This document shows, in pieces, positions 4,177 through 6,661 of a stretch of DNA of 64,000 nt (the first letter of the stretch is position 1; the number at the start of each line of letters is the position of its first letter). The position numbers and the translations under genes are program-made. Origin of the DNA: Zygnema circumcarinatum SAG 698-1b (taxonomy: Eukaryota > Plantae > Zygnematophyceae); assembly GCA_037447605.1 (NCBI GenBank), contig CM074815.1, forward strand, positions 2,666,001 through 2,730,000, read 5' to 3'. The notes under the pieces were generated by a model. The model had not been told where the DNA came from. It did not search any database and worked only from the letters and a program-made list of their open reading frames with translations.

Positions 4177-6661
4177 ATGGCCGCGGCTCTGCCACTGTTT
4201 GTGGTCCTCCTGCTCTCCGTCTCAGCGCTGCTTCCCTCCGCCCATGCCGATTCCAAGGACGGCGTGGTCAGTCCTCAGAACTTGAGAGAGCTCAGCAGGA
4301 CCTCGAGGCATTTGCTGGCGACGCAAAATGGCGGCGCAGAGGTGGATCCGCAGTTCACTCCGCCAAAGGGAGCAACCTATTTGGGTGGACCTGTGATGGT
4401 GAACAGGGTCAACCTTTACGTGCTCTGGTACGGGAACTGGTCCAATGAGACAGCCTCGCAGAAGTTGATCCGCGAGTTCCTGCTGTCACTGGACCGTACG
4501 AACACGCTCAAGGGCGGGCCCACAGTGCGCGGATGGTTCAACATTCTCCGCCAATACTATGACGGAAATAACGACTACGTACAGGGTGACGTCACGCTCA
4601 AGCAGGAAGCATATGATGCCTATTCCCATGGTTTGCAATTGTTCGATTATTCGCAGTTCTCCCCTATTGAAGACGCTGTCAATGCAGGAGTATTTCCTGC
4701 AGATAAAAATGGCATTTACCTTATGTATCCAAGCGCTGACGTGCATGTGAGTCCCTTATCTTTTTCCCTGCGCTTTGAGTTCCAAGCTCTGCTTTCTTAG
4801 AAAAACGTGAGGTCTGTAAAAGACATTACTTTAAAGTAGACTTGTCTCTAGTTTATGTAGTGTACAATAGGGATATAGGCCTAGCAAGTACACCGTACGA
4901 TCCTTCTTAGGTCGTGTCGGTCGTCCTTGGGACATCTAGTTGTAATAGGAACAGGACGCTAGGTCCTGTTCGGATAGTCTGAACTGGAGGAGTCAAGGTT
5001 GAACACGTGGCACGCAGCGATAGGCCTGTGACACCTAGGCCTGTTACAGGCCTGTGACATGTAACTGTAACTGCCCAAGAATGTGTCATGTAGGCCTTCA
5101 CTCCTATCAACTGCTTCTTTTTTTGTGGTGGTGGTAGCATTTTCATCCCGGATTTTACGTCCCCGATGTTGACCTCCAATATTACGAACCTTATGTCGAC
5201 TGCGTCTGCCGTGCAAGGACCTTTATTGACAGTTTAGGCGCCAACGCATTCATAGCTTACAACAGCGATAACGAGTACTGCGCAAGCCCTTGCGGCGTAC
5301 TGATTCCTTCTGCCAACACCAATCCGGCGGCCGATGACATGATTTTCAATACGGGATTTGCCATCCAAAGTATAGTCGTCAATCCGCATTTTGACGCGTG
5401 GAGGATCGACCAAAATTGTGTCTACAGCCAAGTGGTGTACAACAACCCGCCGGATGGTCAGTATAGAAGCACCACAGAATGTGCTGGCAGCTGGTGGGGC
5501 CCACCTCGGCCATTCATTATTCATTCATTGCCTTCCCTCCTGCTTTCGCGGACCGTTGTGGTTGAACACGTGACAGTGGTAACGCTGATGCACTAGGTTC
5601 ACTTCGTTTGGCACTTGTACTTTTGAAATATACTTTTTCTTTTTTTTTCTTTGTTTTTAGGGTTCTGAGTTTGCCTCGGATTCATCTTTGATTGTGTGCG
5701 TGTATTGAATGTAATAATGCAGGGCGTTTCAACGTGTTTGGAAGGAAAATGAAGAAATTTTTGCTCGGGCCGGTTTGGGACATCTCAAAGGGCTCCTGTG
5801 TGATCCAAGGCTCAGAGGCTGTGAACAGAACCAATGTGGGCACGTACTACAAGATGTACGGAAGGCGGTACTTCCGGAGTCCCGTTGTGCGCCAAGAGGC
5901 GGGTCTGCCCAATAGGAGCTGCTACAGGATCGCGCTCTCCCCGCTGGGCTCCTTCGTCATTCGTTGGAATGTCGATGACAGGAAGCCCAACCACGTGGTG
6001 CGAACTCTTAATACTGTTCCAAACGAAATTTGAACGAACTTTGAACGAACTTTGAACGAAATTTGAACGAACTTTGAACGAACTTTAAACGAACTTTGAA
6101 CGAACTTTAAACGAACTTTGAACGAACTTTGACATATTTGTCCCCGTTCTTTATGCGAAATTGAGGTTCAGTTGATTGGCATGGACGACAAAGGTTTTCA
6201 CATCACAGCTGCTTTGCTCTTTGGCTTCTTAAATATTTCTAAGTAGAAAGAGTAGAGGCACCATGCATGAGGTGCTGAGCTGGCGGTATGTGATTGGACA
6301 GGGATGCCGACGTGTCACCTTGTGGGCCAATTCGAATTGCACGGGCACGTAAGTTCTTACAAACCGACCTGCTTCGATCATTGCTTGGATGCCGTGTCTT
6401 TCTGCCCATGCACAACGCTTCAAGATTTGGATGTGATTGGGTGGTGTCTCTAAGCCATGGTCTGTGTGCGTAGCTCTCAACTTAGATGCGCCAAGGGGCT
6501 CGCTCATTCATTGGTTCGCGCCTGGCTTTCTGTTGTGCAGCAATACGACCTACGCGCTTCCCGGCGGAATTTGGAACCCGCTGAATTTCGCATATCCCGA
6601 TACGAAAATTCGCATCCTGCCACATGCAGTGGCTTCCGCCAGTTGTAGGGGGGCGACGTAG
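4177..6661 (+). CDS. Secreted EXORDIUM/Phosphate-induced-1 (Phi-1) family protein with C-terminal extension (paralogue 1)
   Basis: Signal peptide MAAALPLFVVLLLSVSALLPSAHA. Exon 4177-4746 has [18 protein letters not shown] and NGIYL. Exon ~5138-5456 has C..C..R, PSANTNPAADDMI and NPHFDAW. Exon 5723-5997 has FNVFGRKMKKFLLGPVWDISKGSC. Exons ~6251-6348 and 6541-6661 follow. The 5' ends of exons 2 and 4 are uncertain. Confidence 0.85.
6018..6132 (+). repeat. 11-bp tandem repeat (AACGAACTTTG)n in EXO-1 intron 3
   Basis: About 10 copies read directly. Confidence 0.85.

Follow-up and report, generated by a model that had tools for sequence, protein, structure and literature searches.

The question raised by this locus is whether an EXORDIUM/PHI-1 (EXO) gene can carry a second, C-terminal part, and what such a part would be. 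The locus lies in a 64,000-nucleotide stretch of the genome of Zygnema circumcarinatum SAG 698-1b (assembly GCA_037447605.1, contig CM074815.1, positions 2,666,001 to 2,730,000 of the forward strand), which is referred to as the window in the following; all positions are those of the window. EXORDIUM/PHI-1 proteins affect growth as well as carbon and stress responses in plants, and canonical members fold without a C-terminal extension. To our knowledge, their biochemical activity is still unknown. The gene at 4177-6661 on the plus strand (gene 1) and a paralogue on the minus strand both continue past the end of the EXO domain, by 121 and 123 residues, respectively. In gene 1 this tail is read in frame in spliced RNA, and in the comparison of both genes it is conserved at the protein level.

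Transcript evidence was obtained from four of the seven public runs matching the window, compared over positions 4150-6708. Word depth was RNA-like in all four runs, with values from hundreds to two thousand in exon bins and from 0 to about 60 in intron bins; exon depth was 10 to 100 times the intron depth. The contigs of every run contained the same four GT..AG joints, which divide the gene into five exons (Table 1). A single contig of 1006 nt from run X1 covers all four joints, reaches position 6687 and shows no differences compared to the window. With the RNA-supported junctions, the open reading frame (ORF) is clean and codes for 443 amino acids. A minor joint, 4192>4409, has non-canonical CA..GG ends and a low depth. 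Its carrier is probably a contig of 383 nt from run X3, which has the same depth of 6.99 and 15 mismatches; the joint was attributed to another family member and rejected as an isoform.

The junction of exons 3 and 4 reads CACGTG/GTGCGA ... GGACAG/GGATGC and was present once per run, in a single contig of each, with the donor (GT) between 5997 and 5998 and the acceptor (AG) between 6301 and 6302. The original prediction had left this junction open, with a weak AAG near 6250 as the candidate acceptor, and had included a tail of about 140 residues and a protein motif LSW..VIGQ. These points had to be corrected. The AAG acceptor is unused, exon 4 starts at 6302 and RNA depth is close to zero across 6214-6299. 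The 17 residues that include LSW..VIGQ are sequence of intron 3 and absent from the mRNA, which leaves a tail of 121 residues. Instead of ending after exon 3, the transcript contigs continue through exons 4 and 5.

The assignment to the EXO family was examined by exon-by-exon scans with the Pfam model Phi_1 (PF04674). Exon 1 of gene 1 matches model positions 2-121 with an E value of 1.1e-15 and 58.1 bits, which is above the Pfam gathering cut-off of 25, and exon 1 of the paralogue yielded an E value of 8.3e-11 (42.2 bits). The middle of the domain is weak in these scans (paralogue exon 2, model positions 143-210, E 0.087). In gene 1 the domain ends at the motif KGSC, with model positions 250-274 of 276 being covered (E 0.049), and the three pieces are colinear. 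The earlier claim of an EXORDIUM/Phi_1 gene with additional C-terminal coding sequence is thus borne out by the Phi_1 match and by the tail being in frame in the spliced transcripts of the four runs. Six cysteines of the EXO domain are aligned in both paralogues. Single-sequence word-index searches for EXO relatives (exon 1, exon 3 and the paralogue exon-1 ORF with region 60-211) yielded no match. Inspection of the translations revealed a hydrophobic N-terminus with A-x-A sites in both proteins. A membrane anchor was not seen, with a peak hydropathy of 0.9-1.3 past residue 40 and no further hydrophobic segment downstream of the signal peptide. EXORDIUM-LIKE (EXL) proteins are reported to be wall proteins in Marchantia (PMC8792609). 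Those of zygnematophytes are reported to be localised in the wall, to rank with the wall proteins that respond most to stress, and to stand out in stress-responsive proteomes and transcriptomes (PMC12820192; bioRxiv 10.64898/2026.02.10.704744).

The tail of gene 1 comprises residues 323-443, following KGSC without a linker; 66 residues are contributed by exon 3 and the remainder by exons 4 and 5. Comparison of the paralogues resulted in an amino-acid identity of 58% for the tail, compared to 47% for the EXO domain. The number of nonsynonymous substitutions per site (dN) is 0.33-0.35 in the tail versus 0.46-0.50 in the EXO domain. The ratio of nonsynonymous to synonymous substitutions per site (dN/dS), calculated with three methods, is 0.18-0.24 for the tail and 0.06-0.21 for its first part, although dS is saturated and the ratios are therefore rough. 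Exon 5 is 62-66% identical to its counterpart, and of the four 20-residue windows with the highest conservation along the protein, three fall within the tail. Residues 325-344 (17 of 20 identical) are the joint best 20-mer together with one in the EXO core and begin three residues past the last EXO cysteine. Four cysteines and three tryptophans of the tail are aligned in both proteins, and N-x-S/T sequons are present. With six aligned cysteines in the EXO domain and four in the tail, each part therefore holds an even set.

Purifying selection acts on the tail at least as strongly as on the EXO domain. It is selected coding sequence, because it is conserved at the protein level with a dN/dS of about 0.2 and present in spliced transcripts, while the introns are unalignable. 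A dN/dS near 1 was not observed. The earlier proposal of a secreted EXO protein with two domains, the C-terminal addition being real and under selection, is hence supported by the spliced transcripts, by the dN/dS of the tail and by a dN lower than that of the EXO domain.

Paralogue and gene 1 have identical intron positions and phases, with the junctions of the paralogue placed at the homologous sites. Identities in tblastn with the five pieces of gene 1 were 47%, 38%, 55%, 54% and 62%. The paralogue is transcribed as well, since each of the four runs contains a contig touching 4383-4448 (1971 nt in run X1) with loose ends that match 26710-26681 and 26614-26585 exactly. It had been predicted that the paralogue retains the tail motifs and the phase-2 intron, whereas the introns have diverged. 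Both parts hold, except for the 29-nt end of intron 3. Introns 1, 2 and 4 are without similarity between the genes, as is the greater part of intron 3 (z -1 to 2 against shuffles). For the last 40 nt of intron 3 a z of 18 was obtained, compared to -1 for the remainder of this intron; the adjacent exon 4 is identical at 27 of 47 nt (57%). The seven codons common to both genes in the intronic LSW..VIGQ frame are identical at every position despite a dS above 1.4 elsewhere; the constraint on the intron end therefore acts at the nucleotide level and not on a protein. Most likely, this end serves the recognition of the micro-exon. RNAalifold predicts that the sequence just upstream of the 29-nt element pairs with the beginning of exon 4, so that element and acceptor lie inside the paired region. 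The pairing includes one compensatory change from G-C to A-U, which is anecdotal with two sequences only. The element may be a splicing element for the micro-exon.

Relatives of the tail were sought at several levels. A HMMER search with exon 3 (92 residues, 26 of EXO and 66 of the tail) against 1.84 billion representative proteins yielded ten matches with E values below 0.001, none of which was accepted as a relative. Most of those examined (P0007 was not among them) are long proteins with repeats, and their scores add up weak matches from several stretches. Word-index searches with exon 3 gave no match. Pattern scans with the alignments of exons 3 and 5 in metagenomes of the Joint Genome Institute (JGI) and in 185,579 prokaryote genomes returned pattern matches only, none of them confirmed. 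Exon by exon, Pfam contained no match for any tail exon at E values up to 10, and sequence searches of the PDB returned either no match or noise from light-harvesting proteins. Feature searches of the ESM Atlas with tail part 1 of both genes resulted in scores of at most 0.86 or nothing usable. A description of a two-domain EXO protein was not found in the papers searched.

Among the matches, P0001 is a 2112-residue repeat protein of the SGL/gluconolactonase-like type. It contains about eight copies (residues 947-1962) of a unit like xYLLxxAWDISTASFV...TQTGLYFKxDG. This unit resembles the EXO end and tail start (FLLGPVWDISKGSCV...NVGTYYKMYG; window positions 5740-5875), each single match being weak with 26-32 bits.

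On this basis, both genes would code for secreted, N-glycosylated proteins of the apoplast or cell wall, in which a signal peptide and a divergent PHI-1/EXORDIUM domain precede a C-terminal module of 121-123 residues. The module is predicted to be beta-rich, with three conserved tryptophans, four conserved cysteines that presumably form two disulfides, and no detectable relatives. As a compact, disulfide-bonded extracellular unit, it could add a surface that binds a wall glycan or another protein as partner. Such binding would position or modulate the EXO domain within the wall, much as C-terminal binding modules would do in other wall proteins of modular build. We give an even chance to this reading of a secreted EXO protein with a separate wall- or partner-binding C-terminal module, the role of which we infer.

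Several points weigh against it. Prediction of tail part 1 alone with AlphaFold2, based on a two-row alignment, resulted in five strands and no helix, in line with a beta-rich module; the predicted local distance difference test (pLDDT) score of 43.6 makes this model unreliable, and it would be compatible with any beta fold. As no linker is present and conservation is very high precisely where the EXO domain meets the tail, the tail could be something other than an independent module. In addition, the full-sensitivity search covered tail part 1 (66 residues) only, and the HMMER scan produced no self match, the proteins of the organism itself being outside the library. The apparent lack of relatives may hence partly reflect poor sampling of its relatives.

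Tentatively, the tail could be a previously unseen extracellular, disulfide-bonded beta module that is confined to the algal lineage sister to land plants and originated from a lineage-specific modular radiation of EXO/PHI-1 proteins. We regard this as possible, albeit with limited confidence. If true, this would speak for the EXO domain as a unit that binds or senses ligands, with its partners tuning where it is placed or how specific it is.

Instead of being separate, the tail might also form an integral C-terminal extension of the EXO fold in this algal clade, with extra strands that pack on or complete the EXO beta structure. The direct transition without a linker fits this view, as do the position of residues 325-344, tied with the EXO core as best conserved, directly at the junction, and the encoding of EXO end and tail part 1 in one exon. 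The sole match with multiple stretches, the SGL-type protein P0001, aligns its repeat unit across the boundary of EXO end and tail (FLLGPVWDIS...GTYYKMYG). This is a lead at most, however, since the match becomes significant only through summing of 26-32-bit matches over six to eight repeats. The four cysteines of the tail also form an even, self-contained set, and canonical EXO proteins fold without such an extension. We consider an integral extension rather unlikely, but worth retaining as an alternative.

The original prediction had likened the tail to a Greek-key domain of the beta-gamma-crystallin/MiAMP1/killer-toxin superfamily, which would make it a calcium-binding, glycan-binding or antimicrobial module. 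The size of about 120 residues, the beta-only prediction for part 1 and the disulfide content are compatible with this assignment. The Greek-key signature of crystallins is [YFW]-x4-[YF]-x-G with a downstream serine at a G-to-S spacing of about 21 residues. Both paralogues keep the pattern W-x4-C-x-G (exon 4), followed about 33 residues later by S-x-S-C at the C-terminus, which can be aligned with this signature by eye. However, the pattern carries little information, a cysteine takes the place of the second aromatic residue, and the spacing of about 33 residues exceeds that of crystallins. In the first half, the signature is out of register (Y-x4-F-x-S in gene 1 versus Y-x3-F-x-G in gene 2), and the LSW..VIGQ part of the proposed motif turned out to be intronic. 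An internal repeat between the tail halves was not detected by Smith-Waterman comparison against shuffles (four combinations, p 0.40-0.88). Crystall, MiAMP1 or related Pfam models gave no match at E values up to 10 and the PDB no sequence match, both of which are weak tests when performed exon by exon. A Greek-key domain is neither supported nor refuted by these results, and we regard it as unlikely.

Finally, it is highly improbable that the tail is untranslated (3' untranslated region, mis-spliced model or assembly artefact): the first AG after the pyrimidine tract would as acceptor lead to an immediate stop (TAG in gene 1, ...FWEP and a stop in gene 2), but these acceptors are unused in all four runs, the acceptor actually used keeps the frame open to 6661, and the protein-level conservation with a dN/dS of about 0.2 stands against unalignable introns and 3' flank.

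An EXO protein found in nature with an extra module, strongly expressed and under selection, provides a handle on EXO function. Either the ligand of the tail or its packing on the EXO domain could reveal the role of this domain in the wall. The corrected model of gene 1, including the 47-nt micro-exon, is also relevant for annotation. All features are listed in Table 1.

Table 1 Features of gene 1 and its paralogue in the window
Feature	Position	Strand	Content and evidence
Gene 1, exon 1	4177-4746	+	Signal peptide and N-terminal half of the Phi_1/EXO domain; Pfam Phi_1, RNA joint 4746>5138
Signal peptide MAAALPLFVVLLLSVSALLPSAHA	4177-4248	+	A-x-A site by inspection
Gene 1, exon 2	5138-5456	+	Divergent middle of the EXO domain, four cysteines, ends in phase 1; RNA joints 4746>5138 and 5456>5723
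Gene 1, exon 3, first part: EXO domain end FLLGPVWDISKGSC	5723-5799	+	Phi_1 model positions 250-274 of 276, E 0.049
Tail part 1 (66 residues, within exon 3)	5800-5997	+	58% identity to the paralogue; donor 5997/5998
Conserved 29-nt 3' end of intron 3	6273-6301	+	26 of 29 identical to paralogue 23306-23278 (-); absent from mRNA
Tail part 2: 47-nt micro-exon 4 GCRRVTLWANSNCTG	6302-6348	+	Ends in phase 2; RNA joints 5997>6302 and 6348>6541 in four of four runs
Tail part 3: exon 5 (NTTYALPGGIW...ASASC...)	6541-6661	+	Stop codon 6659-6661; RNA contigs continue to 6687-6692
Paralogue (459 residues, tail 123 residues)	22729-26955	-	Exons 26955-26323, 24648-24354, 23772-23495, 23277-23231, 22855-22729; tblastn, clean ORF, Phi_1

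Directly upstream of the ATG, both genes feature (CCCT)n CT-rich tracts, located beside runs of N (4020-4176, 6680-6745, 26985-27020). The RNA contigs depart from the window at 4152 on the 5' side and at 6692 on the 3' side, where the window consists of poly-G with an N gap. Near the N gaps flanking the genes, assembly and transcripts probably disagree. Very long microsatellites fill introns 1 and 2 of the paralogue, with (GA)n extending over about 1 kb and (GAGAGT)n-like repeats over several hundred bases (23860-24300, 24880-25900, 26000-26315). The gene 1 introns at the matching positions are short and unique.

Elsewhere in the window, two ORFs with an equal length of 280 amino acids are located at 9160-10002 and 10796-11638 on the minus strand, 1636 nt apart. 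One of them matches the HEAT repeat region of the LTN1 family (PF22999, E 1.7e-12), and the pair suggests that an exon or gene fragment has been duplicated in tandem. Two further ORFs of 263 amino acids each are found at 61591-62382 and 62930-63721 on the plus strand, 1339 nt apart, each with nested ORFs of equal length in other frames and on the opposite strand. This pair resembles a tandem repeat with a unit length of about 1.3 kb.

Compared to known systems, the proteins are closest to EXORDIUM, EXORDIUM-LIKE and PHI-1 proteins of land plants (PF04674), with which they share the signal peptide, Phi_1 matches in colinear pieces (weak in the middle of the domain) and the conserved cysteine pattern; a location in the wall or extracellular space would be expected. 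Angiosperm EXO genes are typically intronless, whereas gene 1 has four introns. The sequences are also very divergent, as single-sequence word searches with the present genes retrieved no EXO protein. While canonical EXO proteins end a few residues past the last cysteine, 121-123 further residues follow here beyond the Pfam model, which represents a variant architecture.

Single domains of the beta-gamma-crystallin type (microbial crystallins, MiAMP1, Streptomyces and Williopsis killer toxins) are, like the tail, small, secreted, beta-rich and disulfide-containing, these traits being partly predicted for the tail, and its one conserved W-x4-C-x-G ... S motif resembles their signature by eye. 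In contrast to such domains, the tail has no profile or sequence match in the exon-by-exon scans and no detectable two-motif repeat, and its first motif is not in register.

Expansins (DPBB plus CBM63) offer a functional analogy only. Their domain 2 is without the cysteine pattern of the tail, and no sequence relation is shown. Similar to the predicted layout of the EXO proteins described here, a secreted N-terminal domain is in expansins directly followed by a beta module, which is aromatic-rich, comprises about 100 residues and binds to the wall.
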